From the NCBI RefSeq assembly GCF_037042905.1, contig NC_087245.1, positions 43,214,001 through 43,278,000 of the forward strand: a DNA stretch of 64,000 bases. Reading direction: 5' to 3'. Below the pieces are notes generated by a model. The model saw only the letters and a list, made by a program, of their open reading frames with translations. It had not been told where the DNA came from and made no database searches. This document shows positions 10,691 through 57,879 of the stretch, one piece after another (position 1 is the stretch's first letter; each line of letters opens with the position of its first letter). The position numbers and the translations under genes were made by a program. Source of the stretch: Lytechinus pictus. Lineage: Eukaryota.

Positions 10691-11543
10691 GGAAAATTGA
10701 ATCTTGCCCTCTATTAACCTATTTTCAGCATTTCATGCAATTATTGCTATTTTTGTGGTGTGTTCAGAAAACAGTAGAGGTCCTGTGCTGTCCAGTTTCT
10801 TTTTAGGTTTCTAGTAGTTTTTTATTTCTCTCCTTCTTTATATACTTTTTCGTTTATCTCATACATGTGTCATTTGTCTCTGACAAAGGTTCTGCTAGGA
10901 CTGACTGCTCAGGCTCTTTTACTTCGTGTTTTTCCAATTAACATATATTGTATTTTGTGGTTCTATAATGGCTACAATTTAAATGCTCATCTCACCTAGC
11001 AAAGAAGATTTTTTTTTAATAGTCTAGATACTGAGTCTGAATAAGTATCTAACATATTTTCCAATGCGTTCAAGTAGTTTTGCTACTCTCTAAATGGTAA
11101 ATTAACAATTGAATGAATAAATTAATGTATATATAGAGAGAGATGTAGGTTGATTATACAGCCACTATCATGGCAATTTTGGGGTGAGAGTGCATCGACC
11201 CAGCTTGTCAGTTGGTCATCTCTAAGCCGGCTAAAAGGTATGTATAATCCTCTCTGAATGTCAGTGTGATACGATTTTGATGTTGATAGTGTGAAATTCA
11301 CAAATTTGTCATGAATAGTAGAGGTGTCGTGGTCTAGATGTGAATTCCTGGGACTTTCTGGCAAGAAATTTTACTACATCTGCCACTTTCACCCAGGTGC
11401 TATTGTTCATGGCTACTCTATATAATAAGTGCAGTACAACAAACAATAATACTTCTCAGATATTTTGCGCACTGTTTTGCTTCAACAATACACCCAATCA
11501 AGACAATCAATGACATATCGTGCATATTTCTTTCTTCCTTTAG

Positions 11544-14500: not shown

Positions 14501-17500
14501 AACTTGAAAGAAAAAAGTCAGCGAGCCGCGTTATCAGAAATTTTCGTGCAGCGAAACGATCGCGAAATCCGTCGGCCCCCGGCCTAGTTAGGGTTAATGC
14601 AGGGTTAATTATTAAAATAACCAGGTTTTTTTTTTTAATATGCTGTTATGCTTCATGTCTCACATTATTTTTGCATTGTAGGATACAATAAAAGAGTCGC
14701 TGAGGACAAAGTTTAAACACGAGAGAGGGATTCGAACACCATCAACTGATGTAGCCAGGAGGAGGGAGTTGTATGGCCGCAATGGCCCCAGAAAGCGTGC
14801 TGAGGACAACGTGGAAAAGGCCCCATCTCCTGTTAAAAGGAAGAAGCGGGATAGCATTGAGGTAAAGCAACCGTATACTTTTTTAGAGTTATCTGTAGCA
14901 TCTATCTGGCATTTCAATGTTATGACTTATTGTGAAAGAAGCCATCTATTAGATTGTTGGTTGTAATACATGTGTCGATTTATATATAGAAACAAATGAA
15001 ATTTCAATCTTGTGTGCCGATGATTTTTCATGTATTCAAGAACTCATGTGACGTTTTGTTTAAAATTAATGTGCTCTTTTTTTTTTTGTTTAGACCTCAC
15101 ATGGGGGAGAAGACGAAGCCAGCATCCAAAGACACATCGCGTCATTAAAAGATCTGGCATCCAAGAGGGGCGCAGACCCGTCAATTATTCAGGACAAAAT
15201 GAAGCGGACGCGAAGTCATAGACTTTGTTTTATTCAAGCCAATGCTTTGCAGGATGTTCTGAATGAATATCCGATACTGAGGTTTGAAAAACAGGTTAGT
15301 ACTAAATGTATTTCTTTCTTTGATAACATTAAAACTACTACGTACACATCAATCTCTTCGCGCACCAAATCAGATCTTAACGCAACATTGATTATTATTT
15401 ACTATTAAAATTGTACATGTACAAAAAAATATTGAAACTGCAGAGTTATAAATATCGGCTCCTATTTTTCGGAATAAATGGATGAAAATGCAATAGATTA
15501 TAGATACTGCACATCTTCGACCAAGTTAACTACTTTATTCATGTGTGATGTTCGGTTTTCATTTAAGAAATATGGAGGATATTTTGATGAAACTTAATTA
15601 ATGAAAATTAATCAGCGCGGATTAATCAAATGAAATCCATGAATTTGATTGGATAAAAAGCATCGTCTCTTACTCTTTAATAAATATTAGTGTCGGAGAA
15701 TGAGGCTTGTATTGTTGCTGCAACAAGCCTCATGAAATGCCCTCCAGGCGCTAGTTATAAGTGCGCTATTGATTACCTTCTATGAACATTGGCTCATTTT
15801 GTTTAATTTGTGTCCATCCATTCTTTTTAGCTAATACGTGAGCTTCAAAATACGTATGGGGCAAAGGAAATAGCAGCCGCTATTGCCGAATCGGTTACAG
15901 CTAGTGGAGAAGTGATTCTCCGAGAAGGATTGAAGGTGCCAGCAGCACAAGAAGTGATCGAGCAATATCAGGACAAAGTTGATGGTGCGACTACAGACAA
16001 GCAGAAAAAAGGTATTTTGTGCCTCATACCTCCAATTTATTTTATGGTGTAGAGGATAGTACCAAAAGCTATGGAATTATTTGCGATATTTACATTTATT
16101 TCGGCTTACATATAAAAAGGAATTGGTACTGCTAAAGTCACTGTCGTCCATGCCTTCAAAATCAGTTAATTGCATGAGGAGGAACATAACTATCCCACAT
16201 TAGTTGTCATAGTCTTTGTTTATTATTCTTATCATAATTTATTATGGTGCTCAATTTCCCTGTCATCACCCTTTCAGAGAAGAGAAGAAAAAATGGACGT
16301 GTTTCCTTGACAATTAACATGGATATTTCGTTATCTTTCCTTCATGATTATGATCTAGAAGAAATAGCTTCCAAAAGCGTAAAACTGAAATACAATGTAT
16401 TTACATGTATCTATTTTGTTTGGTTTTGTTTTAGATTTACTGGTGGCATTGTCATGCTTGCTGTTTCCTTTGATATTTGGGGAAAAGGACTCCATGTACA
16501 CTATAAACAAGGTAACATTCAGATTCCGCATTTAGTATCTACTTTCCTTGGGATTGATTAAATTTTGCATTTGTCGGCTTTATCTAATTGTCATTCCAGG
16601 TCATTCCAGGCTATCATTTTTTTATGTTAACAATTCTAATTTAAGATAGACACCAATTGCAGGGACTGCAGAACCGGGGGCGGGGGGAGGGGGGGGGTGG
16701 GTGCTCGGGGCTGCAGCCACCACACTTTTTAAAAATTGCGTGCAAGCCTATGGCAATGTGTAAAAATCGTTATCCACAGGCCCCGCACTCTCAGCCCCCC
16801 CCCCACTCTTCAAAAACGTTCCATGGTGCCTGAAATGTACCATCAATAATACAGTTTAACCTCTTTATAAAGATCACTGATGCATGTATATTAAAGTAAT
16901 GTTTTTGGTCAGAGTTCTTTGCATTGATTTGTTTTCCCTCCAAGGGAATAATGAATATCGAGAATCTTTTTTAACCCTATTTTAACTGGGCTTTTTGAGA
17001 CCAAGTTTATACTTCAGATCTCGGCCGTGGATCGCGCAATCGCCGCAAAATTTTGCACACGGATAGAGCAAAGTGTAAACTACAAGACTGTATGGATTGA
17101 TTTTCCGAAAATTCCTAATTTCTATTTTTAAATAATTAATTATGCAAATTTATGCATGAAATCACACTTTCTGCTCTATTTCCCTCAATAAAGCACCTAT
17201 AAGGCTAATTTTTGGTGTGAATATTCTTTATAATATCCCTCATGACACAACTTGAAAAAAATTTGGTATGACAATTTATTTCTTATGTTTTTTATTGATT
17301 TATGAATTTCTTATGTATTTCTTTGTTTTTTAGACCTTGTGTTTTCTATTGTTTTTTCTATGAAATTTATTGCAGGACATTTTTGAAGCATTTTTGTGCT
17401 GAAATAAATTAGTTTCAGCCCATCAAACAAAAAATAACTACATCTTTATGGATTCTGACTGAAATCACAATTTACATTGACTTTGCACACAAAATCACGT

Positions 17501-18054
17501 TTTTGAGCCATTTTCGGTCTGACATGCATGTACAAAAAGTGGTGCGGCAACATAACCACATACCCGATTTTTGCGAAAACAGTCTTAAAAGTTGCGCAAG
17601 ACGTTAAAGAAAAAAGTCAGCGAGTCTCGTGGTGAAAAAATTTTGCGCGGCTGAGTGATCGCGAAATTTGTCGAGGGGGGGGGTCAAATTGACCCCCCCC
17701 CCCCCTCCCCAGTTGGAATAGGGTTAAAGATTTATATGTTTTTATATTTCCGATTGGCTTTCTCTTTCTCAATTTTGTCAGGAACCCCAGAGCCCTACTC
17801 CTACCCTAGTGATATCAGGGAACCCCTTTGAATGTCGTGATTTAGCCATATTCATGGACGGGATAGAAGTTTGTCGAGCATCAGATCTCACATCCGGGTT
17901 TGTTGCAACATTCTCAAGTTTTTATGTGTTTGGGGTCCAGTACCCACAACGTGGAAAGAGGACCCTACAGCTATACCAGAAATTTTTTGCAGGACTGGAT
18001 GATGGAAGTCCCCTACCACCCAGAGTCCAGCGATTTCTTAACAGCCTTGTTTAG
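11544..18054 (+). CDS. Spliced accessory gene of B: ubiquitin/PB1-like N-terminal module plus SAMD3-like body, about 496 aa, start exon unresolved
   Basis: Exons 11544-11829, 12127-12324, 12919-13012, 14682-14861, 15094-15294, 15831-16011, 16435-16511 and 17782-18054. All are GT-AG, phase compatible (2,2,0,0,0,1,0) and stop-free. Motifs include VPEMPHDV, YPHSWEYNAVCSALINKHPIL, EYPIL and FYVFGVQYP. Confidence 0.85.
12812..12910. repeat. (CT)n/(GT)n microsatellite before an acceptor site
   Basis: Read directly from the sequence. Confidence 0.9.
13326..13834. mobile_element. Kolobok-like non-autonomous element
   Basis: TTAA|AGCCCAAGTATAGTTTTGGTAA...TTACCAAAACTGTACTTGGCCT|TTAA: TTAA TSD and purine-purine terminus. 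Confidence 0.75.
13839..14593. mobile_element. piggyBac-like non-autonomous element
   Basis: TTAA|CCCTAAATAGGCTGGG...CCCGGCCTAGTTAGGG|TTAA. Confidence 0.85.
16975..17723. mobile_element. piggyBac-like non-autonomous element related to 13839-14593
   Basis: TTAA|CCCTATTTTAACTGGG...CCCAGTTGGAATAGGG|TTAA. Shares internal CTCGGCCGTnGATCGCGCnATCGCCGC and GAAAAAAGTCAGCGAG. Confidence 0.85.
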
Positions 18055-24482: not shown

Positions 24483-25539
24483 GTGTGAGTGATACACTAT
24501 ACTGCCTTGGCCTTAATTAGGCCTTACGGCTGTGAATATTGTTACTGTTAGTGACCGGCCAAGTAGTCTAGATCTAGACCTAGACTAAACTTAAAATCTA
24601 GGAGATGGGTCTACACTCTTAAAATAACCTCTTCAAATTCTGAAAAGATTTCCTTGTCAAATATTTTCGAATAGAAAACTATTCAAAATGAATAGTTTTC
24701 TATTCAAAATGATTAGAAAACTGTTCAAAATGAAAAAGAATCGTTTCATTTTGAATGACAAAGATAAAAAGATTTCCTTGTCAAATATTTTGAATAGAAA
24801 ACTGTTCAAAATGATTAGAAAACTATTTAAAATGAAAAGAATCGTTTCATTTTGAATGACAATAACAAAAAGATTTCCTTGTCAAATATTTTGAATAGAA
24901 GACTATTTAATGAAAATAGAGAATCGTTCCCTTTTGAATGACAAAATGCCCGGGGCACGTACTGACCTAAAAAATGTGCCGCCGCAAACACCCTCTTCAC
25001 GCCTTAATTGCCTGCCGCTCCGTAGACCCCATATAAATTCAAGCACAATATTTAGTTCACAAGCCCTTTTTGAAAATTCTTAATCCCTTTTGGGGGAAAT
25101 TTAATATCTAGACCCCCGGCCATTTTAAGCAAATTTCAGATTTTTTTGCTTCCAGAGCAATTGACAAAAAATAGCTCTCAACTTCAAACGGCATTTGACC
25201 CACCTCCCCCCCCCCCCCGTCAGAAGCTTTGCCCGGCCCCCCCCCCCTCCAAGTTGCCCCCAATAATTTTCGGAGTGAAAAATTAAAGGGTTGAAAATGA
25301 GAAAGAAAAGAAAAGGGAGGGTTTTTTTGTCCGGCATTGCCCCCCCCCCCCACATTTTGTTTTGCCCCCTATTTGCCCCCCCCCTTAAAAATCCTGGTGC
25401 CGCCACTGCTTTTAAGGTCACTTCGGTTATAGATCTCCTTTTCAGAGTCAACTCGGTTATACCTGTCCCCCGTTTCAGAAACCGGGGCCGCACATCCCTA
25501 CCAAACCCAAAGTTGAGTGCCCCCCCCCCCGACAAAATG

Positions 25540-30293: not shown

Positions 30294-30463
30294 GTGGGTG
30301 TTTCATAAAGCTGTTCGTAAGATACGAATGACTTTACGAACGACTGGTGATCCTTTCTTGTGCTCTGTGATATCCCTATGTAATTGAATTATGACCTAAG
30401 AACATGTTCCAGTCGTGCGTAAAGTCGTTCGTAACTTTACGAACAGCTTTATGAAACACCCAC
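30294..30463. mobile_element. 170-bp MITE with 3-bp TSD (PIF/Harbinger-like)
   Basis: CTG|GTGGGTGTTTCATAAAGCTGTTCGTAA...TTACGAACAGCTTTATGAAACACCCAC|CTG. Confidence 0.8.
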
Positions 30464-30879
30464 CTGATGACCACAGATAGTGTGTTTATTTTGCTCAAAA
30501 GGACTGATTTCAATACAATTTTAGCCTCTTTAGGGGGTAAAGTGTATCATTGATGGGGGTTATTAAATTTTTGTTGCTGAAATAGGGGTGTTGTAACTTT
30601 ATCGCCGTCGACTTTTTGTAAATTTGGACCCCCCCCCCCCTCACAAGAAAATGCTAGCCCTCGTAGGAAAGAGATAGAAACAGATTTATGCAAAACTAAT
30701 TTTCAACATTTGAGGCCATTAGGAGAGGGTCCTCTATATATGAGTTAAGTCAAATTGAAAATGTGATGTCAAATTAAAAAGTTGAACCAAACTTTTAACC
30801 CCGATAATGATTATCTTCCCTTTTTATACAGCTCCTTCCTTTTCACGGATCTCCTTCCAGATTGGAGTGTGTTGTCATC

Positions 30880-33800
30880 ATGGATGACTTTGTTAAAGAG
30901 AAACTAGTGATGTGGGGGCTGGAAAGATTTCTGGAAAATTTTGAAGGTAAGCTTTTGTAATCATAACTGTTCAACTGTCGCAAAATTTGATATTGTTGCT
31001 TGAAGAATTTCTCAGACTGAGCAAGTTTAATTGAGTTTAACACTGCATTTGGTATGCAAAACAGTGTTAAATATGCACAGTAAATGCATGCCTAAGCCTT
31101 CCGTATTTGAATGTACGCAGCACGCAAGACATTTACTGCCGTTCAATCAAAGTCCGAGAATAACGTTGGGCGTTCATGGTTAGTAACAAATCACTTTACA
31201 CACTTTTTTATCCGTTCGAGAAATTCCTCAATCAACAATAAAATAATATTCCATCTATAATGTGAGCCTGTCTGGCTATGGATTTGTTTGGCCATGCTTT
31301 GACCTACGGAGCTGTTTGGCTTGTAGGGGGTTAGCAAGCTTGAAGGTGTGTGATGTCAAGCTTCCAAATTTTGCACTCATTTTTACTTGGAATATTTATA
31401 ATGAGCGATCAACTTTAAATTGTTGTTCAAAATAAAATGTTTTGCCGACAGACTTACCCAACTTTCTGGGCAGTATGTAACCAGAACAATTTTGTCCCGC
31501 CTTATGTTTGTTGTTGAACCTATGACAAATGTGTACAAAATAGTTTTGAATTAAAAGTAGGAGTGGGCTTTATACAGGGGTCAAAACACTTTTTTGGTAA
31601 TTTAATTTTTACAACAGTGTTTTTTTTGTGGGAAATGACTTATCTCAATATAATATGGAAAAATTTTGGACTATGTGTTTACCAAAAAGGTGCGCCATGC
31701 CCTCTTATGTCAGCTCATAGCTATTGAAATTGTGGGAAGGAGCAAAAAGTTACTTAATTTCACTCATTTTCAGTGAATATTTCTGTACCTTTGGTGTCAA
31801 ATTAGATGCAAATGAAGTCAAAATACAAGATTTTGAAAGTTTTGTAAAAATCAGACATTTCGTTTTTGTGAAATGCGCCATCATAGGTTAAAATGTAGCA
31901 TGAGGGTGCTTTTCATTCTTTCAAAATTTTTTTGAATTTTTTGCTTATCAAAGGATACCAGAATAAAGATAATACTAAGTTTGACATCCTCAAGAAGTTT
32001 GAGCTTTCTATTGCAAATGGTTTATCTGTAGCGACTATTAGAGTATCCGATTAGAATCGATATGTTTCCCATCAAATTACACAGAGGAAAATTTTGGTCG
32101 GTAAAGAGCGTGCATTATTTACAGGGGAAGGGGCAAGGAGAAACTTATGGGGGAGGGGTGTCATATGATTTTCAGTTGGTCAAATATTAAAGGGCATTTT
32201 GGGGAATTTGGGTCCTTGCATGCTTAGAACACAAAAGGGAAGATGCAATGCATTAATATGTGTGAGATAAACATAGTGTGCCTCAGGTTTTTTGCGCCAT
32301 TATCACTTATGCTAATATTGCAGAAAGATTTTGCTTACATGCGCACTAGAAAGCCATCTGAAGAACTTTGAATCTTCCTAATTTTCCAAGATTTGTGTAG
32401 GTCATCAGCAAATATTATGTTTCAAACTTCAAAAGTGTTTCTTGAATTTGATACCAATTAAATTCTACCAAATTCAGCTACATTGTATGTATTATGAAGA
32501 TTCCCCAACTACTGCTCCATGAGATCGAAGCGAGAACTTCGACTCAAGAACCACTAATTTTTTTTCTTTCTAATTACACCCCTCATGAAAACCTGGTAAA
32601 AACACACATGCCCACAATGCCTGTAATCTGGATCATGAATAACACGGAATATGGTCATATGGTTTTATTTGTAACAGAACAAGAGATTGACCAAGAAACC
32701 CTCCTTCTCCTTGATGATCAAGCTGTGAAAGCGGATTTGATAAAGCCACTTGGTCCAAGATCAAAGCTGCTCCAAAGGATAAAGGAATTGAAGGTACTAT
32801 TATTTTGACTTTTACTCTGTAAAGGAGTATATCGGAAACACTATTCTAATGGAATATAATTGTACTTGTCCCAAGTGTGGTGAACTTATAGACGGTGGCA
32901 GTAAAGCAATTTTATGGCATTTACAGAATCGACATGGTGTTATTAAGGGCCGTATTTTTACAGAAAGTATAGTATGTATGCAGGAAGGGTGCCAACGAAC
33001 ATTCTCAGGCAGAACGGAACAGTTCAAGCGCCACTTGATGAGTCATGCTTGTACTAGAGAACCACATGGCCATGTCCCACCACGTCCACATGGTAATTTT
33101 GATAATGCTGCAGATGTTGACGCAGGCAATGATTTTGCTGAAAACATTGATGTTGACATTGACCCAACAGAAGGGGATGCTGAGATGTGGGATTATTTTG
33201 GTGAGGATGAAATTAAGGAACGGGCTGTCATGCTGGTTGCGGGTCTGCTGGCAAACAGTAGCATTGTCCATACCACAGTTAATGAAGTTGTAGAAAAGTC
33301 AGCTTCTTTAGTTAAAGACACGTGTATGTATATAAAATATAAGGTGCAAAAATTCGGTGCAGAAACTGGACTTGAAGAAAATGATGAATTTCAAAGTCTC
33401 CTATTGGATATAGATATGGTTTCCCACCCGTTTGATAACATGGAAAGTCAATACAAGCAGAAGAAATTCTTCAAGAACAGTGCAGCTTTTATTCAGCCTG
33501 AACAAACTACAATAGGTATTGCATATTATCCATGTAATAACCGTTTAACAGGCAATGTGCAGCAGGTTATGAAGACTATCACATGCCAGTACATTCCAAT
33601 TAAAAAGCTAATAACCTTATTGCTTGAAAAAACAGATCTTATGAAACTAGCTGTAAGCTATGAACCAAGCACAGATGGTATGATGCATGATTTTCAAGAT
33701 GTTTTTTTTTCTGCAGGCAAAGTAGGTTTTTATCTAGCACTCGTACAATCAAACTAATTCTGTATGTAGATGACTTCGAGGTTACCAACCCTCTTAGTCC

Positions 33801-36800
33801 TAAGTCTGGGACTCACAAACTGACAGGAGTGTATTTCAAAATTGCTAGTGTACCACCTCAATACCGGTCAACTTTAGCAAACATATATTTGTTGATGCTG
33901 TTCAATTCAAGTGACGCAAAACTTTATGGATATCCTGTGATTTTGTCACAATTGCTGAAAGATCTGAAGGTGCTTGAGTCAGATGGTATAGCCATTCATA
34001 CCGACACTCTTGATGGAGTTGTAAAGGTTGGGATAGCACAAGTAGTAGGAGACAATCTAGGGATTCACTCATTGTTTGGTTTCAGCGAGGGCTTCACAGC
34101 AAACTTTCCATGCAGAACTTGCCGAATGCCACGTGCTGACATAAAGCATGCTTTACTTGAAAGAAAAGAAGTAATGCGGACACCTGAGAATTATCAACTG
34201 GACCTTAATAGGAATAGCTTACAAGAGACTGGTATAAAATCACCATGTATCTTGAATGAATTGACACACTTTCATACTCTAGACAACAGAGCACCAGACA
34301 TCATGCATGACATGCTAGAGGGAGTGTGCCCCTTGGAGGTGAAATTGGTGCTGCATGAACTTATCAGAAAACAAGCTTTTACATTAGAAACATTAAATGC
34401 CAGGATTACGAGTTTCAATTACGGCCTACCTGATGCAAGTAACAAACCCTGCCCCTTCACTAGCAATCAGCTTCGTTTTCCTGATGGTGCTGCAGGACAG
34501 CATGCAGCACAAATGTGGTGCCTTGTCCGTCATATTGGAGTTATGCTTGCACATCTTATTCAAGAAGATGATGAGCACTGGGAACTTATCGTAGCTTTGA
34601 AACAATGTATGGATATCATTTTTTCATCTAAGATAAGCAAGGGACATACCTTGTTCTTGGCACAATTAATTAGAGACCACCACATGCTCTTTTTGCAACT
34701 CTTTCCTGATCGTGATCTGAAGCCGAAACACCACTTCATGAGCCACTACCCTTCAGCAATGCAGCTGCTTGGACCTCTCATTATTTATTGGGTGATGCGT
34801 TTCGAAGGAAAGCACAACTTTTCTAAACGTTTGGCACACATTGTGTGCAATTTCAGAAATATTGCCAAAACTCTAGCCTACAGAAACCAAATGCAGCTTT
34901 GCTATAACGTATTAAGCAATCAGACAATGACACAGAAATCTGTTGAAACAGGTCCTGGTTTATCTGTGATGTTAGCATCATTGGAAGGTGCTGAAATTAT
35001 ATCTCAGACATGTAGCATACCTTTATATGATGATATATATGTTGCACAGTGGTGCAAGGTTTATGGTACTGAGTATCGTGAAAATATGATGGTGGCAGTT
35101 AGCAAAAATGACAATGGAGATGCCCAATTTGGAAATGTGAGAACAGTGCTTGCAGTTGGTACAACAGTTTTTCTTGTGTGCCATTTGTGGCATACATATG
35201 GATTTAAAAGACACTTCCATGCTTATGCGGTACAACCTAAAGAGCCAAAGGAAATAACTGTGGTTCAAGTTGAGAATTTGATTGACTCTAATCCCCTGCA
35301 TGCTACTAAATCCTATGATGACGATGATGACTTGTATTACATAAGCACAAGATGTATGTTGTAGGTGAGTAATTCAATCGCAAAAAAGATTGATTTATTT
35401 TGCTAAGTTACTAAAACAGGATTTTCAATCTACTGCAGGTCACAAACCATTAATTTTGAGCCAGAGCTCGATATACAATGCACATGTAGAGGGTGCACAG
35501 CACACATGCACAATGTAGATAACATTTTTTGTTTGCATGTAGAGTTTCTGACCTGCATACACATTGTGCATGTGAAGAAATCTGATTAATTCGTTACAAT
35601 TTCAACTCACAACTCACTTCCTTTATGACTGCTTGCTGTTCATAGCAATATAACTTGACACTTTGACGGACATGCAGGATCCAAATTTTTGGTCTAAAAA
35701 CTTGGATGTTAATACTGTATATAAGTTTTCAAGTTTTACATGTAATAGAAACTCTTAGTTTAAAAAAAAAAGTCGATGCTTTGACATAAAAACAAACAGA
35801 CCAAAAAAAAAAACAAAGGAGTACATAGACCTTCATGTTTGAGTAGCTCAATAGCTCAGGAACTCCTGAAAGAGCTTGTAAACCAGCTAGGGAGTTTTGT
35901 AAAGATTTAGTGATTCTACCTGATCTTAGTACAACTCTTGTATGAAACTATAAGTAGTATAGTGATTAAATGCTGATTGGAACTTTTGGAATTTTGAATA
36001 AATTATCTCTGGGAATCCATTGAGCACTCTGTTTTGGGAATTGTGAAAACAAATTTAATGATTTACTGTATTAATAACCATCTGTTCTGCACTTCACTAC
36101 TTGAGGGACCATCATTGATCTCTGAAGATTGCACGTTCTCTGAAGATATCCCAAGTACTAGCAACTCCTCACTGTCTATCCCAAGTGGTTCATCAACATC
36201 TATCATCAAACCACCAGAAGATATCCCAAGCACCAGCAACTCATCAACGTCTATCCGAAGCAGTTCATCATCAACATCTAAACCACCAGAAGATATCCCA
36301 AACACCAGCAACTCGTCAGTGTCTATCCCAAGCAGTTCATCAACATCTATCATCAAACCACCCGAGGCTAAAAAGATCAAGATGGCTCATGTAAGTTTTT
36401 AATCAACATTAAGGGAGGTCAGAGCCTTGCGACTTCTGTAAAATTGTTTTCATTGTAACTTGAAAACTGATAATGTATGCTGAATAAATGTAGACACTTT
36501 TTAAAAGGAAATTTCACAAGAAATCTAATTATAGCATCAGATTTTAGATTAAGAACTTGCTTTTCAGAAACTCACCAAAAACAGCAAGTTATTTATCCAA
36601 TTTTTTTAACAAGCCTAGAAAAAATACTTTTGGGTAAAAAATGGGTAAACATCATCTAAATCGATAGTTCTTGGGTATGTTTTTTTTTTTTTTTAAGTTA
36701 AATTCCTATTTTTCAAAATATTTGTCAGTAAAGGCAAAAATCATTTTTTTAAACCAAAAAAACCCATCATTTGTAAAGCAGTTATTTGACACATATTGGC

Positions 36801-39800
36801 TGTTTTTTAGAAAAATATGAAATTAATTTAAAAAAAAGGTATGAAAACAATCCCAGAAACTATCGATTTGGATGATGGTACCACATTTAACGATTGTTGG
36901 CGCAAAATGAAGAAAAAAAATGTACTAGCTAGGCTCCTTGTTTGTTCCTGTTCCTATAGTATCTCTCTCATATTCTAGATGTGAAGGCCCCGGCACATAC
37001 ATGGATCACTTAAAGCATCCACTTATGACCTTTCTTTGTAATCACTTCTGATCTGCAGGACATACGAGCCATCTTGTCCAAACGGAGAGAGGGGGAGGAG
37101 CTTATAAAGGAGATGGAGGAAGGGTGCATCAGCTACAATTCACGAAAATTGATAGTGAACACATTGGTCTCACACCTGATAGAGACATATACAAAGTGGT
37201 AAGCTAAAATCCTATGAGCAGAAAAAGGAAATGCTAGCGTATTTAGATGTGCTATACTATGTGGTAGTTTATTTGCTTATTTGCCTTACCAATTGACTCC
37301 AGTGATCAAATAGATGTCAAGGATTAAAAGTTTGACCACAGACACATACATACCATTTCAAAAGCAATCCCTTTCTCTTGTAGATGACACAAAAGTTAAT
37401 TATCAACTTAACTGGTGCATTGCATACCAGAAATAACCAGACACTTGGTATAAAAATTGTATACATGTAATCTTATCTAACAAATTTCACATAAATTTAT
37501 ATTTTCTTACATTTTCATGGCATAATTGAAACTTGTGTGTTGATATTTAAACACAGCTTTTGAATTGTTTATCACATTTACATAACAAATACATGCAATG
37601 AGCTGACATTACATGTGTATTATGCAGGTGCTTGGAAATAGTTTGGTGTGATACATACACCTTGCACTGTTTGTCTGCTTTATTAAAGGATGGGAGTTTG
37701 GAATTACTAAAATCAGAAAATGGGTGGATCAAAATTTTGCTATATAAAGGATATTCTCAAAGCAGATCACCAATGAAGCAGATTTTCATCAGACTACAAT
37801 TCAAAGCAGGGAATAATTTTGCTTCCCAGATTTGATTAGAAATTTTTGGAGATGGGAAAATATTTAAAACAAATTATGTACAATCCCATGGAAAAAAAAT
37901 TGTGACACAAAGTAAATTTTGTGTAGCAGCCCTGCAAAAAAGCAAAGCAAATTGCGATGCGATACTAGGTAATTTATTCCCTGCAAAGAATTGCATTTAA
38001 TCTCTAATATATATAGCCTTTTAAAACAATATTCTTAAACATTCAATTTTCATTTTTCTAAAGGCCTAAAACAGAGCAAAAATTGGCAATGGCAAAATGC
38101 ATTGTTACCCAGTTTCCTGCGTTGGACAATGATGATCATGATGCTTACGTAAGTTTTGAGTTCATTATGTTAGTTCATGGCTAGATAAATTGTGTGTAAC
38201 ATTGTTACTTGTTAAAGATAGGATCACCCATTTACAAGCCATGTTCATCATTGACTTTAGGCTCATGATGACCAAGATAACCATTGTTTATACTTAATAT
38301 CAGCTAATGCTAAATGGCCCCCTGAACACGTTATCTGCAGCAGGTTATTATTTACTCAACCAGACAAAAGTGGATGAAACTTGATACAACTGAAAGTCTA
38401 AATGCTTAAATCATTGAAAGGTTATTGTCTCAGATTGGGCAAGCCTTTATTAAGGTAAATCTGATTGACCGTACAGTTACCCCAAAGGGTAATACAAATT
38501 CTTATGAACAGTGATCTCTACTTCTAAAATTCAATAGTTTTGTTTTACTTTTTTTACTCTTTTACTTTAAAGTTGACCTGGTTCACTCCAGCAAGCCAAA
38601 ACAAAACAAAAGATTCGTCAGGTTACATTGAAATGCGGCTAAGGAACGTCAGATATCGTGATCCTGCCAGAACGCCAAAAGAAAGCAACAAGAAAGTGCA
38701 AGCAAACTTGCCTAATACAGAAGACCTGGATCTGTCGTCAGGTAAGGAAGAAATATAACAACTGAACATTACATAACCTTAGTTAATTGGTCATGGAGAT
38801 CTAATAGGGGTATTTGTGTCTGCCAGGGAAGCATACACAGAATTAGTCTCAAATAATACCCATGCATGTGTATAGTGTCTTTTAAAAAGTGGGTTTAAGC
38901 AATCATGCTGACACATTCAAGCGACATCTGAATATACAAATTAGTTGCGCTGTAACGAAAATGAGGCAATTTTTCGTATCGATCTGAATGATATTTTGGA
39001 GATCTGCGCCACAAGTTCCTTCCTTTTTTTCTGTACCCTTTTTGTTTGTACAAAATAGTGAAATCAGTCAAGAAATATTCAGGGAAGTGGTTAATTCTTG
39101 ACATCTTAACAAATAAACTCCTAGTGCTTTAAGGCTTCACATGCTTCATCTATTCAGCACCATGCACATTACAGTGTATGAGCCTGGGGGTTGAGCGTGC
39201 ATCATGCAGGCTGCGACGATTTTTTCTTCACTTGATTGCCTGGTCAGGCAAGCTTGGCCTTAAAACTGCTTGACCTTGCTAACAAGCCGCATAACAAAAC
39301 GGTCTGTGCAAAGTTAAAAGTCAGAATATGTTTATGGTTTGTAACTATTTAAGACATGTATAATTTTTGGATGTGTGTAACTTAAGTGATAACATTGATG
39401 CAAGCTAACTTACGATTTGATATTAATCATTGTTGCCCAAACCAAAAAATGATTGCCCAGGGCAATCAGGCAACCAATTGTCACAGCCTGCCCACATGTT
39501 TTATTTCTTGTGTTAATTTTTTACTGTCATCAGGTGAAATGGAACATTTGCTTGTGACTGTCATGACTTATAAATAAACTAAAAAGGCATAATGCATTAA
39601 CTCCCTGAATTTATTTGCATATTTAGATAGAGATGAGGAAGTAGATGCAAAAATAAAGTGGCTTCAGGACCACAAAGAGCCAAGGCAACAAGTTCGATCA
39701 TGGATGAGGGATACCTGTAAGGCGAGGGCAGGCTACATTAGAGACAATAAGGACAAACCTGTGCAAGAGCTTTTACTGTTGTTTCCACGTTTAATTGACA

Positions 39801-42800
39801 CAGAAGGAATGGTAAGTTTTCAATGGTACTGACTAGTAAAGTCTTCCTGCTTTTGCAGTAATTCCTGCTTTTTTAATTTATGATTTCCAGCTTGATCTTG
39901 CACTTTTATCTAATTTCAGCCCGTTTTGAAGGCTTTTAAAAGCCCAGATTCATTCACATTTTCAGGTTTTTCCTTCAGGCCAGCTTGCATTTCTAAGACG
40001 ATGGCACAGTTCTGTAATGTGATGTGAAAAAAATAGGGGTGTCTACATAGGGTGGCAAAATATCACAGCTCTCACAGTTCACAACTTATACACTTTTTAG
40101 CTCCCTGCGTTCAAATTTTTTGCAGAGCCATTTTTTGACCAGTCAGCTTAGTAAATTATTCAATTTTATGTATATGTAATTCTTGTAGTTTCCACTTTAA
40201 TAGAGCAAATAGAATGTACAAAACAGGTTTTCTTTATACTAATGACAAAACATAAAACTATTCGATTTTAACTTTGTCTTTATACAGGTTGACCAGGATT
40301 TCCGAATTCTTTTCCCACAATCAGCAGATAAGTTATTCCTCACATGGCCGAAATTTTGCAGACATGTCCTGAACTATGCTGAAAAGCAGGTGGATTGGAG
40401 GCTATACCTTAACTTCAAAGGTGCTGTTGAAACAGGTAAAATGGTGCTTATGTCTAACAGCTTCACTCTTCTTTCAAACCTACAGTCAGGCCATGCCATG
40501 CCCGTCACTTTGACAGGTAACTTCCCTTTTTGACGGGCAAGTAATGAACATTTTATACAAATTCAGCCCATTTTGGACAGGCACTCTTTCAAAAATGAGG
40601 GGCAACTCCAAAATTCTAACTAAGGCCCTGCCTACAGTAGTGAATATGCAATTTGAAATCCATTCTACATGTATGTATTATAATAGCTTGGTGAAAACCT
40701 GATAATCCAGACTATGATTGTCCCATTTCAGTAAGTGGGATTAATGTTAATGTTAATTAATTAGAGCGATGTGAACTATATCAACATTTTTTACAATTTG
40801 CAGTAATAGTAATAAACTACAAATATGTCTGGAAAAGTATTTGTTTCTTTTAAATATGAATATTATTATTAATTCATTTACTTTGTCGTACGAAAACTTG
40901 CTTCCTTCATCATATCATTGCTGAGATGATAAAAGCCTTATATCTCAACAAAAAAGTGAAATGTTCAGGAGAGCATAAATACATTAATTGCTTTCAATAC
41001 AAGATTACAGATCATGTTCATGTAAGTTGCAAGGTTCAGTAAGTTCATTGTACATGTAGGACATAATATTTGCAAATTGAAATGCAAAAGTTTGTCAGAA
41101 CAAAATCTGAATTAATTAGCAACAACAAAATCTTTTTTAAAGTCATTTTCATCAAAATTTGACATGCAGATCGATTTTTATCATCTCTACGCCAATATTG
41201 GGATCTTAAATTTATGCTACTGACATGTACAGTGATTTTAGTATTGAAGGATGAAAATTTTTGTAAAAAAATTGCTATTTCAAGATAACTCTAATTTGAC
41301 CTCTGCCAACATCATTCTCACCCACCTAAGACTATAATATAACCAATGATATTATAGTCTCATTCACTGGTGTTGAGTCGTATTTGATAACCACCTCTTT
41401 ATCTCCAATTTGAAATTGTGTGATATGAATGGAGGACAAAGCCCGTGTTTGATGCTGGGAAGGGGGTCTTAGTAAAAGGGTGGGTACGGGGATGTGTGGC
41501 CCGAATAGGGTCCTTTTTGGCCTCTCTTGTTTACCTATGGCCCCTTTTTTTAAAAATTGGTGTACATATTAATTTTTGAGGAATTTTTCTTTGGTTTACC
41601 GATATATTGTCAAAAAGTACTTATTTGCATTCCAATTTACTTGGTATTAAAAAACACTGATTAGTTTTAAAAAGGCCCCTTCCAAAAGCAACAAAAGTAA
41701 ATGGTTAACACATGGGTTGCAAATTTGCATCTTCTTAGGTTTACTCATCAAAGGGTGGTTGTTGGAAATTTTGGGTGTTCGGGCTGCACATCTGTACTTA
41801 ACTTTAATCTCAGGTTAGATGTGATAAAATGAGCACAAATTAATCTTAGTCTGTCCTGGAGTTTACTTCTCTGCAGGTGTTTTTGCCGTTGCTATCATGT
41901 CACGTTTGCGGCGTCTGTACGCGCTTTCATATGCACTTGTTTGATTCACAACACGCTCCCATAACTGGTTGATGAGCAATTTACTCTTGCTATGCTGCGG
42001 CATAAATTGTTCTTGTACAGATGTGACTTTGATGTGAGTTTGAGAGAAAATAAACATTTGGAAGAACTATAATTTAGAAACTTACAAATGTAGTTGTATC
42101 TTGTCTCCTATGTTTCAGATGAACAGGAGGTAAACTTATCTCTGCAGGTGTTGCCTATGCTGTTTCCACCGGGAAAGAAGAAAGGGGCAAAAGGGAGAAG
42201 TGGTTCTTCAACGATGGATGAAGCCCGCAAGGCATTCGTGCAGCGCAAAGAGGTGAGGAACAAATTTTATTTTTACTATTTGGCACACACTGTTTCAGAC
42301 AGATCAAGCAGAAATTAAACAAATACCCAGAGCCTGCTATTAAAAGGACAGGACTGAGATTATTTTAGTGATATTACATAAAACACACAGTGGCTCATTG
42401 CAAAGGGTTGTAGCACCTGGGCAAAAAGTAGAAATTGCTCTCCTACAGTATATCTGGGGCACTCCTATGACTCCATGAAAGCCTAGACAAAAATATGACA
42501 TTTTGTGAAAGAAACTGCAGTAAACTCCTTTCTGGATGGAATTTTTTATAGTAAAATTTAAATAATTTGACAAGCCCGCTATAGTGCTCTATAAGTTTGA
42601 GTCAGTTAAATCAGCTATATGACACAAAAACTAAGCAATTGTGGCAGCAAGGGTATTTACACGTCTGAGACGCATAGTGTGTGTGTGTGGGTGAATTTTC
42701 GTCTTTTTTAACCCCCAAAATTTGACATTTGAAAACGTGGATCCGTCAGAAAAATCTGCAAACAGACGTGTTTATTTTGAATCTTCACAGAAAAAATAAT

Positions 42801-44069
42801 CAGTTTTAAGGCTGGTGTCAACCTGTCAATGTTTGAAAAGGTTTTGCTCTGTAAATCAGCCTTAATTATTATTCCTAGTAAATGAGTGCGTTTGTAATCC
42901 TAATAGGAATATGAAGCTATCCATTATGAGACAATATATGACAGTGCATTTAGCGGTCAACACAGTGAAGCTACACATTATAACTAAACGCGAACTGCTC
43001 TACTTGGTTTGGAATATTGTATGTTTGAATAGGGGTGTACATTTTTCAATAAAACTGTTGTTTTTTTTTGGGGGGGGGTGTTGACATCATCTTTGGTTTG
43101 AAAATTACTAAAATTTGTGACTGAGAATGAGAATAAAAGATAGAATTAATTGTTTTGCCTGTCATATATCGTCTCATAACGCAGGCGCGGATCCAGGATT
43201 TCTGGGGGGGGGGGGGTTCAAACTGGGAAAATTTTCTGACAATAATTTGAAACCTGACAAGCAAAAAAAAAAGAAAGAAAAAGCTTATCACTCCTTTTTG
43301 AAATCTGACAAGCAAAAAAAAAAGTCTTTATTACTCCTTTTTGAAATCTTACAAGAAAAAAAAAAAGGTTATCACTCCCTTTTTTCCCCCGCTCGCCCCC
43401 CCCCCCCCGTATCCGCGCCTGTCATAATGGATGGACGTACATTACAAATGATAGTACTGTTCCGTAGTGATTACTAAAAAACCTGAGAAATTAATTTTTA
43501 AAAAAATTTCTTTGAAAACTGTTCTGGAGGAAAATATGTTTCAGTGAGAATTGAGTTCAACGAATATTGGCATGTATAGCTGCTGGCTGTATTTCCCTGC
43601 ATTTATCAGAACTTAGTCACAACCCTCACTACATTTGCCTGTTTTACTAAGATTGAAATGATGCACTAAATATTCCCTCCTTCATTTGTGGATGGTTCTG
43701 CTATCTCACTTGTCACCAATTTTATTTGTATTTCATATGCAGATTGGTACAAACATACCAGGCTTCTTGGACCAGAAGACTCAAACACAACCGTTTGTGT
43801 TAATTCAAGGTGAAATTGACAAACCAGAACAAGTGTTTGTTGTTGTGGAAAATAGCACCATCCCATGTACAAGTCTCCTGAAAGGAATTGATATATGCAT
43901 GAAACTAGTGTATATCCTTGATATGGATTATGCTTGGCAATGTCAACATGTTTGGGACTTTCTGCAGAAGAATGTTTACAAACTTGGGCAGGTGAAAGGT
44001 AGAGGTACCTCAGTTCCAGCAGTAACACTTCTCAAAACCTATCTAGAAAACAAGGTAAAAGAAGTTTAG
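30880..44069 (+). CDS. Spliced accessory gene of D: SAM domain, Ser-rich linker and SAMD3-like body, 551 aa, 10 coding exons, intact
   Basis: Exons 30880-30946, 32678-32793, 36106-36390, 37059-37198, 38064-38148, 38573-38741, 39627-39811, 40288-40435, 42119-42252 and 43743-44069. All GT-AG, phases 1,0,0,2,0,1,0,1,0, total 1656 nt with no internal stop. Confidence 0.88.
32849..35364 (+). CDS. EnSpm/CACTA transposase of D (838 aa when restored), one frameshift at about 33701; lies in intron 2 of the accessory gene
   Basis: ORF 32849-33757 joins the frame of 33829-35364 through LILYVDDFEVTNPLSPKSGTHKL. Motifs GDNLG, CRTC, APDIMHDMLEGV, PKHHFMSHY and WVMRFEGKH. Adding one G before the T9 run restores the conserved DG. 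Confidence 0.92.
43182..43421. mobile_element. hAT-like MITE
   Basis: TIR CAGGCGCGGAT / ATCCGCGCCTG, with 8-bp flanks TCATAACG / TCATAATG. Confidence 0.7.
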
Positions 44070-46812: not shown

Positions 46813-47853
46813 TTAAAAGGAGATGTTAACCTAGAGCTGTGAATGCTTTGTATACCAGATGTAGCTCGAGAATTGCAAACCCTATTTTTGTGGAAACAAT
46901 TCTTACTATGAGAAAGCTTTACAATGGCTTAAAGGCATTGGTCAACATGGTGTTCAATTTTAAAAATCTGAGCTGCATGTTCTTACATGTATGCTATCAG
47001 GATGTCTATTGGAATATAGAAATGAACCTGAGGGGGGGATGCTTGAAGTTTTATCATTTACAGAAAAAACTTTTTAAAATTGGATAACTTCAACTTATCA
47101 TCCCATGACTACTGTGCAGGAATTATTGTCTTACACTACATAATAAACATAATGTTCATAGATCATGTCTTGATAGTGAATATGTGACTTTCTTTTGTTT
47201 TTACTTATGTAATATACCTTTCTATAATTTGTTATGTTTTTTATATTGTTAATGTTACCAATTCCTGAATTTGGTGTTGCAATAAAATGTGTTATATGTG
47301 AAAGCTAACACTGATGATTCTCCTGTTTTCTTTATGTGTGTATGACAATGATTCTATTCATTTTGAACAGGATTCTATTCATTCTTGAATAGAAAGACTA
47401 CTCATTCTTGAATAGGAATACTATTTAACTTTGAATAGGGTATATTCCAATTTAACAAGAGGATGAAACTGATTCTATTCATTTTTAATAGGATTCTATT
47501 CATTCTTGAATAGGAAAACTATTTAACTTTGAATAGAATACATATTCATTTATTTGAATAGATTTTCCTCTTCATTTTGAAGAGAACCTTGTAAGTGTCC
47601 CTCGGAAGAGGTTTTCTATTCAAATCTGAATAGATTCTATTAAAAAATGAAGAGGTTTTTTTTAGAGTGTAGATCTAAATGTAAAAGATCTAAAACTTAA
47701 AGCTAATGTAAGTACAGGAACCATAGCCTTTACACAGAATGTGGAAATTGATTATCTGCTAATTAATGCAAATATATTAAAATCACCAAACAATGCTTTT
47801 TTTTAAATGTAGGTCTAAGTCCAACTTGACTCTAAATCTGGTAGAGCTAAGTA

Positions 47854-49468: not shown

Positions 49469-50640
49469 GAGCATTTCTTCTCAGAAAATGAAGGATTCAT
49501 TGAGTACAGATTCAAGAATATGAGGCCGAATGGCAAACAGGGTAAGAAGAGGAAGCATGCCAAATCAGATGATCACAAACAAGAAGATGTGATAGTGGAT
49601 GAGGAATTACTTCAAGATGAAGAATTACAAGAAAAGGTGTGAGAAATATAAATCTTGTTACAGTGTTGATTCCTGCAAAATAATATGTGAAATAAGATGG
49701 GTGGCTGACTGAAAGACTTGTCTGAGTTTAAATAAACTGATTAGAAAAGATAATTCAAGATATTCTTAAAGCACAAATATAGTTTTGGTAAGGAAAAAGT
49801 AGAAAAATAAAACTTGCTCTATATTTGAAAAGACATTATCAAAAGTATTTTCGAACAGCTTTCACGCTTTGAACCGAAGTCAGATTAATGATTTTACAAT
49901 AATTACACCTTGCAAACTGTACATGTAGTTATTATATGTATAGATTTGTTCGAAAGTCCTCCGAACAATTAAAAATAAGTCAAATAAATTATTAAAAAGT
50001 AAAAAAAGAGATTCAAAGCAAATTATTATTGGTCAATGACTTGCCTTGATAATCATTCTTTCATTCTCAAGTTTGTTTCATCAATCTGAGTGACAATGCA
50101 CATTTGGAAAGCTCTAATAGGTGATTTCATACAGTTAACATTTAACGAAATTATATTGACAAATGTTGTGAAATCTATTTCTCATGTCGATATTGGCATG
50201 GTTTCTGTCATTTTGATGATGTATTTGCCATGTCAATGGCATCCCTAGTATGCATGCACATCTGTGTAATGTATGCAGAATAGCTCAAAATACGAGATCA
50301 AGGGGGCACTAAATTAAAGGCACGTTTAGAAGTAATACAAAGAGTATGTCCAAGGCAATAAAAGTGCCTTACATGTACATGCAGGTTATTTTGATGGTTG
50401 AAATAATACGGTAACTTCTGTCTTTCAGGTTAACTGAAAGAAGCACACAGTTCCCACTGCAGCAAGTAAGGGGAAAATTATCAAATTTTTAAAAGACACT
50501 GCTGCTTATCGTCAAATGATGCTAAAGAAGAGGACAGACATTACCATTACAGACTTCATCACCACCTTTCCAAGGATACAAGAGATGCCAGAACTTTGTC
50601 CAAAATACTCCAGTCTGATTAAGGTTAAACTTTCATTTTC
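49469..50640 (+). pseudogene. Remnant exons of the C accessory gene
   Basis: Exon 49469-49636 (EHFFSENEGFIEYRFKNMR..., compare D SGYIEMRLRNVR) and an exon from 50429 (VN*KKHT...FLKDTAAYRQ...FPRIQEMPEL, compare D KWLQDH...MRDTCKAR...FPRLIDTEGM). In-frame TGA at 50435; downstream exons are missing. Confidence 0.75.
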
Positions 50641-55280: not shown

Positions 55281-57879
55281 TCATATTGTGGTTCTGTCTT
55301 ATTATACCCCACTATGGTAGCAGTGCATTTATGCTAGGCCTTTGCCTTAAGGTGCCTTGAGGCCAATTTTTTCAATTCCTATGGCCTTGAACTTTCATGC
55401 CTTGGCCTTGAGGATTTGAAGCCTTGAAAACTTAAGGCACTTTCATGGCTTTGTGAGATTTTTACCATTTCTGAATGTCAATATTAATCAGCACTGAAGA
55501 AATCCGCTGAAATATCTTGCTTTGGATAGGTAGCCTGGAGGCACAAAGTTAACCATAATTAATTTTTCTGTGATTTTTTCTTTTCATAATCATGTAAGTT
55601 TTTTCATTCCCTTTCATGCATTTTATGTTCTTTAAGTCAAGTAATAATTCAATATAGTTTGAGTGACTATAATGCGGACACTGAGGACTTTTAGAAATAT
55701 GAGTTGTTTAAAAGCATTATGCATGATAGACTCGTACCAAGACTATATGAAGAGGTGGTCATAATTCTGCCAAACGGTCATGTCATTGGGTGGTTTCTGG
55801 GTGAGTCCATAAACAGGACTTGGACTGCAAATTAAAGTGCTTCTTAGAAAAGCAAACTTTAAAAGTCTTTGCTGGTGTGCAGGGTGGGAGGTTGTTCTAC
55901 TTCCTCGACCCCCCCCCCTTTGGGTACGGGCATGCATTACAGTTCCTGTTTTCATGTCCTGATAAAAAAATAGAGTCTTCTTGATCAAAACACACATTTG
56001 CTCAATTGCATTTTTAGTCATCTTTTAGTCATCGCTGTCTAAATTTCACATTATTTTCATGAAAGAGTACATGAGTCATAGTACCAGAGTGTTGCAAAGG
56101 CTGCAACTACCAAAGTGTTGGGTCTTTTTTAACCGAAAATCATGGCTGTTTTTTTTTTTTCGTGCTCCTTTTCCTTGCTGCATAGCATTGTGTCTTTTTC
56201 AAGGGGAGGGTGTTATATTTGATGCACATTGCACCTTGTTTCTATAACTTTGTGCATATTATGAGTCCTCAAATATATTCGTTGACTACAGCCTTGGGTG
56301 GTTAATCCTTAGCTTTGGCCTTGGATTTGTCTACAGTCCACACCACTTAACCCGCCAAACATAATGTACAGTACATGTACAGGTAGCTTGTAGGGGGAAT
56401 ATACATGTAGGAATCAGCGTGATGTTGGTTGGTCAAGCCGTCTGTTGCAAAATATGGCCTTGCAAACTCCTCCTCCAGTTTTGAAGCAATTTGAATGAAA
56501 CTTAGGGTAAATTATAAAATTGAGGTAAAGATGTTGAAAACTTGCTTTTTGTGTTTTCGGGCTATGCATTGCCATGGTAATCACAATTTTACCAAAACCC
56601 TTGCAAAGCAGATTACTTCCACAGTATTTAAGCAATTCATTTCAAATTCGGTATGTGTGATGATCTAAAGGTGTAGTTATGCAAGACAATCTTTGTCTGT
56701 GTACGGACAAAGCATTGCCATGGTAACCACATGTGAAAATCTTGTGAAGTGAATAACTTCCACATGCAAGTTTGAAGCAATTGAAATTTAATTGGGTAGG
56801 CTATTATGGCATTCATGTAAAGAAGGGGAAAACATTTTTTTTGGGGGGGAGGGGGGTATCAGACAATGCTTTGTCATGGCAACTACAATTTTACCAAAAT
56901 ATTGCAGATCATGTAACTTTCACAGCTTTTGAGCAATTTGGGTCATGTTCAGTATTATTGTGCAGATCGAGGCTCTACAGGTAAACTTGTGCAAAATCTC
57001 CATTGTGTTTGATATGCCCAAAGCATTTTCATTATACCAAAGAGAGCACCATTTTTAAGAGGGTGAAACATTCTTTCTCGAGCACATGTATACTACATGT
57101 GCTCAGAAAGAATATTATGCCTTAGAAAGAAATTTATAACCCAAACATTTTTTGAGGAGTTCATCGATGTTCCACATCTGAAGTTAATTTGTAATTAAAT
57201 TTATGGCAGATGTCGATAGGTCTTATTTTCAAATAGATATCAGGCAGTGTTAAATTCCTTTCGACAAAATGAAGGGGACCTAAAGGTACGCACATATAAT
57301 AAGTGTATGCCTATTTTGATTTTGAAGCTGACTGGTTTGAATCTTACTCCAATTTCTAAGTAAATGTATTACCAAGTTTAAAGCAAAATTAATGATTCTT
57401 TTGCGCTTCCCTTGAAGAAATTCCCATTGCTTGGTCACATCGGATGGTGCATTGAAGGTATTGCATTGTGCATATTTTCTGATTAGCTGCTTAGCTTTAG
57501 GACCCTGGCCATAAAATAATGTCTTCGGCACCCTTCAGGGCAGATTCATATATGAGTGTTTTTTCATTTCTTAATTATTGGTTCACCAAGAAAAAAATAA
57601 AATTATGTATAGTCTTAAAACAATTATATTTCAGTTAGCTTCCTGTTTTCAGTTAGCTTACTGTAATCACTTTTTCAAACTAAGGCTGGTAAATCCTAAG
57701 ACGAGTAGAAATCTAATCTACTGAAGATGTACAATGTAATTTCATGCATATTTCTCCAGTGAATTGAACTAATCTTTTTTTTCTCTCTCTCCTTTTTTCT
57801 TTCCTGCAGTTTCTCATGGACGATTTATGCAGTGTCCCAACTGACAAATGCAGACGGATTATGTGCAATTCATTCATCT

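Follow-up and report, generated by a model that had tools for sequence, protein, structure and literature searches.

In a 64-kb stretch of contig C1 (NC_087245.1) of the sea urchin Lytechinus pictus, hereafter called the window, a transposase gene lies within an intron of a second gene on the same strand, which codes for an accessory protein with a SAM domain, and both genes are part of one mobile element bounded by terminal inverted repeats (TIRs), here called element D. The original prediction, made from the letters of the window alone, had likened this pair to the two-gene system of maize En/Spm, with a splicing choice between accessory protein and transposase. From RNA contigs, searches of the 812-Mb L. 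pictus assembly and a comparison with relatives in other animals we consider it probable that element D has one main transcription unit, which yields two products by the choice of the 5' splice site after exon 2 of the accessory gene, and that the accessory protein assists or regulates transposition. Support for the structure is solid, and a TnpA-like function would, on our analysis, be a reasonable inference.

The gene pair and the boundaries of element D

The accessory gene model comprises ten exons with 1653 coding nucleotides (nt) and gives a stop-free protein of 551 amino acids (aa); when rebuilt it came out with the same exons as in the original prediction (Table 1). Long relatives of the last open reading frame (ORF) were mapped collinearly, leading to seven further exons, and for each intron that GT-AG pair was chosen which keeps the frame and best fits the hidden Markov model (HMM) of the family. 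All nine introns are GT-AG, with GTAAG, GTAAA or GTGAG as donor in eight of them, and the proximal donor at the end of exon 2 reads AAG/GTACTA. The SAM domain is encoded by exons 1 and 2, divided by an intron of 1731 nt, and exon 3 contains a threefold tandem repeat (36142-36365). Exons 4-10 are collinear with the family HMM (per-exon E 8e-6 to 3e-38), and RefSeq models of fish, sea cucumbers, a brittle star and a crinoid can be aligned with the 551-aa protein over its residues 1 to ~545; one of them, P0160, covers residues 1-544 with E 1e-67. Exon 10 has 96 matches in the genome, and a search of the representative library gave 637 relatives at E<=1e-3.

Table 1. Positions in the window of element D, its two genes and the further transposases
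Feature	Position	Strand	Basis or remark
Whole element D, CACTA/EnSpm-like DNA transposon	24614-47669	+	23,056 bp; copy alignments and empty sites
Target-site duplication (TA), 5' copy	24612-24613	.	empty and filled sites compared
Target-site duplication (TA), 3' copy	47670-47671	.	empty and filled sites compared
5' TIR, CACTCTTAAAATAACCTCTTCA	24614-24635	+	20 of 22 positions equal the reverse complement of the 3' end
3' TIR, near-perfect inverse of the 5' TIR	47648-47669	-	
5' subterminal GAATAGA/TCTATTC cluster	24669-24899	both orientations	
3' subterminal GAATAGA/TCTATTC cluster	47353-47634		
Accessory exon 1, ATG and first half of SAM	30880-30946	+	RNA joint 30946/32678; homologous exon in H. 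leucospilota
Accessory exon 2, second half of SAM	32678-32793	+	Pfam SAM_1, E 9e-5; RNA joints at both ends
Read-through tail after exon 2, VLLF then TGA	32794-32808	+	sequence; layout also in A and two H. leucospilota elements
Transposase ORF	32849-35364	+	frameshifted-looking here; other copies have it intact (837 aa)
Candidate distal 5' splice site, GTGAGT	35365-35370	+	directly after transposase stop TAG; homologous donor used in H. leucospilota
Accessory exon 3, Ser-rich linker	36106-36390	+	RNA joint 32793/36106 and loose end after 36390
Accessory exon 4	37059-37198	+	RNA loose end equals exon start; HMM E 4e-12; conserved intron position
Accessory exon 5	38064-38148	+	HMM E 8e-6; splice choice; conserved intron position
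Accessory exon 6	38573-38741	+	HMM E 6e-7; splice choice; conserved intron position
Accessory exon 7	39627-39811	+	HMM E 1e-19; acceptor 39633 fits equally well
Accessory exon 8	40288-40435	+	HMM E 3e-12; splice choice; conserved intron position
Accessory exon 9	42119-42252	+	HMM E 5e-9; splice choice; conserved intron position
Accessory exon 10, C-terminal alpha/beta domain to stop codon	43743-44069	+	HMM E 3e-38
Transposase A, truncated	2311-3593	+	
Transposase B	7706-10690	+	
Transposase E	57832-60560	+	

The transposase ORF lies, as had been claimed, wholly in intron 2 (3312 nt) and on the same strand. In the window it appears to be split into two frames by two extra nt in a T run (33702-33710) compared with the copies C3, C7, C12 and C1b; since the site is a homopolymer this may be an assembly error, and one transposase contig from the RNA run X1 described below is free of the two nt. 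The intact ORF of 837 aa is letter for letter identical to RefSeq XP_063957930.1, with the RefSeq label 'isoform X1' at two loci, and seven further copies show open frames of 849-857 aa. The N-terminus carries a C2H2-like zinc finger, and the near-invariant residues D307, D401 (in a GDNLG motif) and E652 (in RFEAKH) may, judging from their conservation, represent a DDE triad. A Pfam analysis of the ORF pieces of the window and of the intact transposase led to SAM_1 as the sole significant match and to none for the transposase itself. Among 28 transposase relatives, three matched Transposase_21 (PF02992; best E 3.7e-5), one DUF4218 and one Plavaka, all of them CACTA-associated families, and no other transposase superfamily of Pfam was matched in this set; the H. 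leucospilota model P0011 reached 19.2 bits with Transposase_21, below the cut-off of 28.6.

The span proposed originally (30880-44069) covers the gene pair and its exons correctly and is too small for the element, which extends from 24614 to 47669 with a TA duplication, because both the copy alignments and the empty sites end there. Six further copies align with 98.7-99.7% identity from window position 24612/24614 to 47669-47672, and at 12 empty sites elsewhere in the genome the sequence is GGGTC-TA-GATC, compared to GGGTC-TA-element-TA-GATC in the window, which proves a target duplication of 2 base pairs (bp). The TIRs of 22 bp are of the CACT type typical for the CACTA/EnSpm (CMC) superfamily, with CACTCT at both ends and C (not A or G) as the fifth base. 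Like members of that superfamily, element D also has clustered subterminal repeats in both orientations, 13 of the 17 GAATAGA/TCTATTC 7-mers in the window being located within ~320 nt of its ends, and a short target duplication, which with 2 bp resembles the animal TRC elements, unlike the 3 bp in plants. The insertion took place in another repeat (24560-24613 and 47670-47730), which is found uninterrupted at least 12 times in the genome.

The family has at least 12 copies with ~99% identity; copies of the last accessory exon at >=96% amino-acid identity were found at least 12 times, and a search with the 38-aa SAM exon gave nine copies, all of D's own family. Three copies (C3, C7 and C12) have an intact accessory coding sequence for an identical 551-aa protein, C1b is without exon 9, and in C21 a loss of 30408-36791 has taken away the transposase together with exons 1-3. 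Element D is a young cut-and-paste DNA transposon and a member of an active-looking CACTA/EnSpm-like (TRC-type) family. The nested position alone could also be explained by a host SAM gene hit by a transposon in intron 2, an explanation with next to no probability: all ten exons are inside the TIRs and move with the element, copies on at least 10 contigs carry accessory exons, and the empty sites are devoid of everything between the TA pair. The exon-carrying copies and the empty sites together refute it.

Transcripts from Lytechinus pictus and Holothuria leucospilota

RNA reads and contigs were aligned to positions 30850-36849 of the window. Run X1 yielded one contig of 3526 nt (depth 16.5) with the joints 30946/32678 and 32793/36106, both GT..AG, the latter skipping 3312 nt including the entire transposase ORF, and a loose end after 36390 corresponds to the first letters of exon 4 at 37059. 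As the exon 2-3 joint is absent from genomic DNA (0 matches in the assembly at <=2 mismatches), this contig represents spliced RNA; the accessory transcript starts at or before ~30806. The predicted junctions 1-2 and 2-3 and the start of 3-4 were thereby observed, and with them the En/Spm-like layout, in which an accessory mRNA removes a transposase located in its intron. Separate short contigs of X1 with a depth of 4.4-5.8, compared to 16.5 for the accessory contig, lie only within the transposase ORF (33122-35013) and leave intron 1 and all other parts of intron 2 uncovered. In run X11, six reads carry ~82 unrelated letters (beginning with CTTGGGTAATCAGTTGCTTGAAGTGTTGGC) before window position 34429; this 30-mer was found neither in the window nor elsewhere in the assembly. 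Position 34429 is not a plain splice acceptor, because no AG precedes it.

The second splice form was found in the sea cucumber Holothuria leucospilota, whose homologues HOLleu_29486 (835 aa) and HOLleu_29487 (467 aa) are neighbours and are both encoded by a single Logan contig of 4488 nt (L014). Comparison with the genome locus (L015) showed 99-100% identity and the removal of eight GT-AG introns. From a point within intron 1 to the end of the transposase ORF, SAM exon 2 and the spacer included, the contig is colinear with the genome; it is then spliced from a GT located 2 nt after the transposase stop to accessory exons 3-10. L014 is a tnpD-type transcript. Eight junctions are shared in position and phase between the L. 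pictus model and the H. leucospilota RNA, one of them with an offset of four alignment columns in a gapped region; exons 4-10 of L. pictus are supported, because their junctions coincide with those of this RNA-verified homologue. A stop codon ends the SAM frame 2-8 codons after the exon-2 donor in D, in element A of the window and in two H. leucospilota elements, and the transposase ATG follows 2-40 nt beyond that stop. The H. leucospilota element (L015 1-22508) is located within a wnt gene, in one of its introns and on the strand opposite to it, and its genome copy has GC at the exon-2 donor where the RNA contig has GT.

That the main product is a fusion of transposase and body, or of SAM, transposase and body, is very improbable. 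Two protein models, P0011 from H. leucospilota (1216 aa) and P0052, are annotated as fusions, and splicing of the distal donor to exon 3 in D (35362-36108) would place transposase and body in one frame with only TAG between them. However, the ORFs in the RNA-verified H. leucospilota transcript are in different frames with their own stops, and P0011 requires an unsupported join inside the transposase N-terminus. As the H. leucospilota frames differ, the frame match in D is probably a coincidence.

The accessory protein and its linkage to transposases

Structure prediction of the whole accessory protein led to a predicted local distance difference test score (pLDDT) of 84 and a predicted template modelling score (pTM) of 0.70, compared to 87 and 0.87 for the body alone, in whose model a small alpha/beta domain comes after a helical part. 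A canonical SAM domain is seen in the model of the A. japonicus accessory protein P0186 (Z 10.7, root-mean-square deviation 1.8 Å to solved SAM domains). When Swiss-Prot models were searched with Foldseek, human and mouse SAMD3 (Q8N6K7 and Q8C4H2) were the only whole-length matches (E 1e-13; query residues 46-523 aligned with SAMD3 residues 7-497), the next match following at 1e-2, and in the Atlas a homologue without SAM domain gave a template modelling score of 0.56 over 353 residues to a SAMD3-like cluster. The original label 'SAMD3-type' therewith holds at the level of the fold, with predicted models on both sides of the comparison. Vertebrate SAMD3 shares the N-terminal SAM domain and the ~400-aa body with the accessory protein, but the sequence identity is only 15-17%, and a word-index search with the family profile returned close relatives only, no named SAMD3 sequence among them. 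Unlike the element-borne accessory gene, SAMD3 is a single-copy host gene and a marker of natural killer and CD8 T cells; the titles and abstracts listed for it state no molecular function.

In ten full-length homologues no Pfam family was found on the body, and SAM was the only family domain apart from a sub-threshold Transposase_21 match in the fused P0011 and NPL in an unrelated part of P0050. Foldseek of the body against the PDB gave nothing at E<=1e-3. Weak body matches to PvuII-like nucleases and to HMG-C1, BEN, the DnaA DNA-binding domain and a homeodomain (Z 3.9-4.9) were within noise and were not used. The AlphaFold cluster library contains the fold in fish, sea cucumbers, aphids, springtails, Daphnia, ants, beetles and mosquitoes, and some of these proteins have 1100-1240 aa or are named as C2H2-type or BED-type domain-containing.

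Linkage in the L. pictus genome was defined as an accessory last exon <=20 kb downstream of a transposase on the same strand. This was observed for 24 of 47 transposase matches, at distances of 2.5-15.4 kb (expected 0.05), and, among the 23 transposases with a long ORF and >=36% identity, for 22. Families with a more distant transposase (28-33% identity) had no accessory match with D's query; elements B and E of the window show that such families can carry more diverged accessories. Across families the identities of transposase and accessory protein are correlated (Spearman 0.77; the families are not independent). A second H. leucospilota family, with 44% identity, has the same order SAM exon-transposase-body, and so does the grass-carp gene si:dkey-286j15.1, in which the transposase is reduced to decayed fragments between the SAM and body exons. 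This gene (L016 10001-23823, transposase fragments at 10389-13407) has an internally duplicated body, and a locus of the same name is found across cyprinids (66-94% identity) between Tmemb_14 and laminin-G genes. It appears to be a domesticated accessory gene.

Echinoderms, fish, octocorals and arthropods all have members of the accessory family. The identity of P0186 is 51-59% with proteins of octocorals (Dendronephthya, Paramuricea) and ~40% with those of fish, and judged by these sequences the patchy distribution of its relatives suggests a horizontal spread of the elements.

Altogether the window contains four diverged transposase paralogues on the plus strand, with 21-51% amino-acid identity and no nucleotide similarity. 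A tblastx comparison of D with the rest of the window detected the transposase paralogues and no accessory exons; these were found by an HMM built from homologues. According to the original prediction A has the same flanking exons as D. This is true for its SAM exon (2128-2271, HMM E 6e-10), which ends with GAG/GTATTC and is followed by a stop 8 codons later and by the transposase ATG at 2311, but the transposase is truncated at about residue 425 with a frame change near 3075-3123, and no body exons were found before B. The spliced downstream homologues claimed for B and E are seen in B as exon matches at 12920-13024 (weak), 15169-15279 and 17764-18024, downstream of a transposase that lies in two blocks (8291-9265 and 9713-10660) and is not followed by a GT donor. 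In E, however, the transposase (58102-60509, frame change at 59163/59166) is followed by a weak SAM-like match (60730-60858, E 0.03) and by one long ORF similar to the accessory body (63099-63803, E 4e-6), which is seemingly intronless. Two accessory-like exon fragments at 49490-50596 (HMM positions 193-241 and 252-294) lie beyond the 3' end of D and belong to another element. CACTA-like transposase matches are all on the plus strand in two regions, at least nine in C1 43.01-43.28 Mb and six in C31 0.2-0.45 Mb; such insertions in one orientation are reminiscent of a uni-strand PIWI-interacting RNA cluster or of a recombination-poor chromosome end.

Splice choice and the probable role of the accessory protein

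Use of the proximal donor at 32793 removes the transposase ORF together with intron 2 and leads to the 551-aa accessory mRNA, as seen in run X1. In the sea-cucumber element an RNA skips the proximal donor and joins a distal donor behind the transposase stop to exon 3, and the L. pictus donor TAG/GTGAGT at 35365 would be used likewise. In L. pictus itself the longer mRNA is indicated by this donor sequence and by the RefSeq label 'isoform X1'. In this form the SAM frame would end at the stop 32806-32808, and translation of the transposase would begin at the ATG that lies 40 nt further on. The accessory protein would be a cofactor or regulator of transposition, which may form oligomers via the SAM domain and, similarly to TnpA in maize En/Spm, may act at the clustered GAATAGA motifs near the element ends. 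The splicing switch of the original prediction is at present supported by one form in each species, the accessory mRNA in L. pictus and the transposase-retaining RNA in H. leucospilota.

Several observations weigh against this model. Neither use of the distal donor nor retention of intron 2 was observed in L. pictus RNA, where the raw runs are thin (the ribo-depleted runs X9-X11 gave 0, 9 and 24 reads without joints, too few to speak either way), and the RNA label of X1 is a guess, its RNA nature being deduced from the joints. L014 starts 322 nt inside intron 1 and is without exon 1, so that an internal rather than a shared promoter is possible. A comparison of exon with non-coding variation among the young copies gave no significant sign of selection (p = 0.10). 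The body showed neither a DNA-binding nor a TnpA-like fold (best PDB match in VIA-align Z 5.0, noise), the protein is not basic overall (isoelectric point 6.7), and an upstream transposase was detectable for only 25 of 88 accessory last-exon matches.

The start of L014 would also fit two nested but separately transcribed genes, the transposase with a promoter in intron 1 or 2 and a poly(A) site of its own, the accessory gene spliced constitutively and no regulated switch between the two. ATTAAA (35965) and AATAAA (35997) are indeed present in intron 2 downstream of the transposase stop, and the transposase contigs of X1 are not joined to exon 2 or exon 3. We nevertheless regard such an arrangement as unlikely: the two genes have exons in common, since L014 splices from just past the transposase stop into exons 3-10 of the accessory gene, and the donor after the stop is conserved at 44-49% protein identity, as is the tight spacing of donor, stop and ATG.

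It is somewhat unlikely that the accessory protein is no cofactor of transposition and instead a passenger, an anti-silencing factor or a repressor like the short P-element product. This alternative draws on the absence of a detectable DNA-binding fold or homology to TnpA (Pfam and PDB searches, with no solved TnpA structure in the comparison) and on the 63 of 88 accessory copies without a detectable transposase nearby. Several of these 63 matches belong to multi-copy families with identical scores and are probably deletion derivatives like C21. Moreover, fish keep a conserved single-copy gene of the accessory type although its intronic transposase has decayed, and a protein of this type can therefore be useful without transposition. 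Against this stand the stable linkage, the co-divergence of the two genes from 100% to 36% transposase identity in this genome and also across echinoderm classes, and the clustered subterminal motifs, which resemble the binding sites of TnpA.

The preferred model of one transcription unit with two splice products can be compared to known systems. In the Drosophila P element a splice choice in one transcription unit decides whether transposase is made; its alternative product is a truncated transposase, whereas that of D is an unrelated protein with its own exons. Like D, maize En/Spm is large and has CACT-type TIRs and subterminal repeat clusters (DeMarco et al., 2006, PMC1636069, and general knowledge). 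Its transposase ORF lies within an intron of the accessory gene, the shorter accessory mRNA removes it, and the longer mRNA keeps the transposase together with downstream accessory exons, for which the H. leucospilota element provides the counterpart. A further parallel is that in X1, the one run considered for this, the accessory contig has a greater depth than the transposase contigs (16.5 against ~5). The analogy to En/Spm holds for gene architecture and alternative splicing, because the accessory mRNA lacks the transposase, a related tnpD-like RNA exists and the corresponding donor is present in the window. Differences are the target duplication (2 bp TA in D, 3 bp in En/Spm), the D transposase following the SAM exon immediately, within intron 2, the accessory protein with SAM and SAMD3-like body, which has no detectable similarity to TnpA, and the D transposase without Pfam match, of which some relatives touch Transposase_21.

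For animal CACTA-like elements, alternatively spliced short products without transposase were described for SmTRC1, whose shorter transcripts without transposase domain are also more abundant (DeMarco et al., 2006, PMC1636069). SmTRC1 and the TRC elements share with D the animal host and the 2-bp target duplication, and SmTRC1 also the abundance of a short transcript without transposase; their transposases are related to Transposase_21, a family that in the case of D is matched by some relatives of the transposase. However, the SmTRC TIRs start with CCC instead of CACTC, and the short products PrA and PrB had no detectable relatives in other animal elements (PMC1636069), whereas the D accessory protein represents a large conserved family. 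No paper linking SAMD3 or SAM domains with CACTA/EnSpm elements was found; Repbase notes were outside this search.

The alternatively spliced pair of genes in maize En/Spm is a long-standing textbook example. An animal two-gene layout of the En/Spm type had previously only been sketched for one schistosome element, without relatives of its short products. Element D is an animal counterpart with a conserved and widely distributed accessory protein, and the transcript evidence covers both splice forms, one per species. Since exact ends and young intact copies are available in a laboratory sea urchin, excision and binding studies are feasible. Many 'uncharacterized' animal proteins, including by fold vertebrate SAMD3, are tied to a transposon context, which gives a concrete hypothesis for their function. 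Tentatively, the SAMD3-like family might be the ancestral and conserved accessory gene of animal CACTA/EnSpm transposons, with vertebrate SAMD3 as a domesticated copy, similar to what the cyprinid gene si:dkey-286j15.1 appears to be, an idea that we hold to be possible without favouring it. If true, the biochemistry of human SAMD3 would be approachable via transposon biology, e.g. DNA-end binding and SAM-driven assembly.

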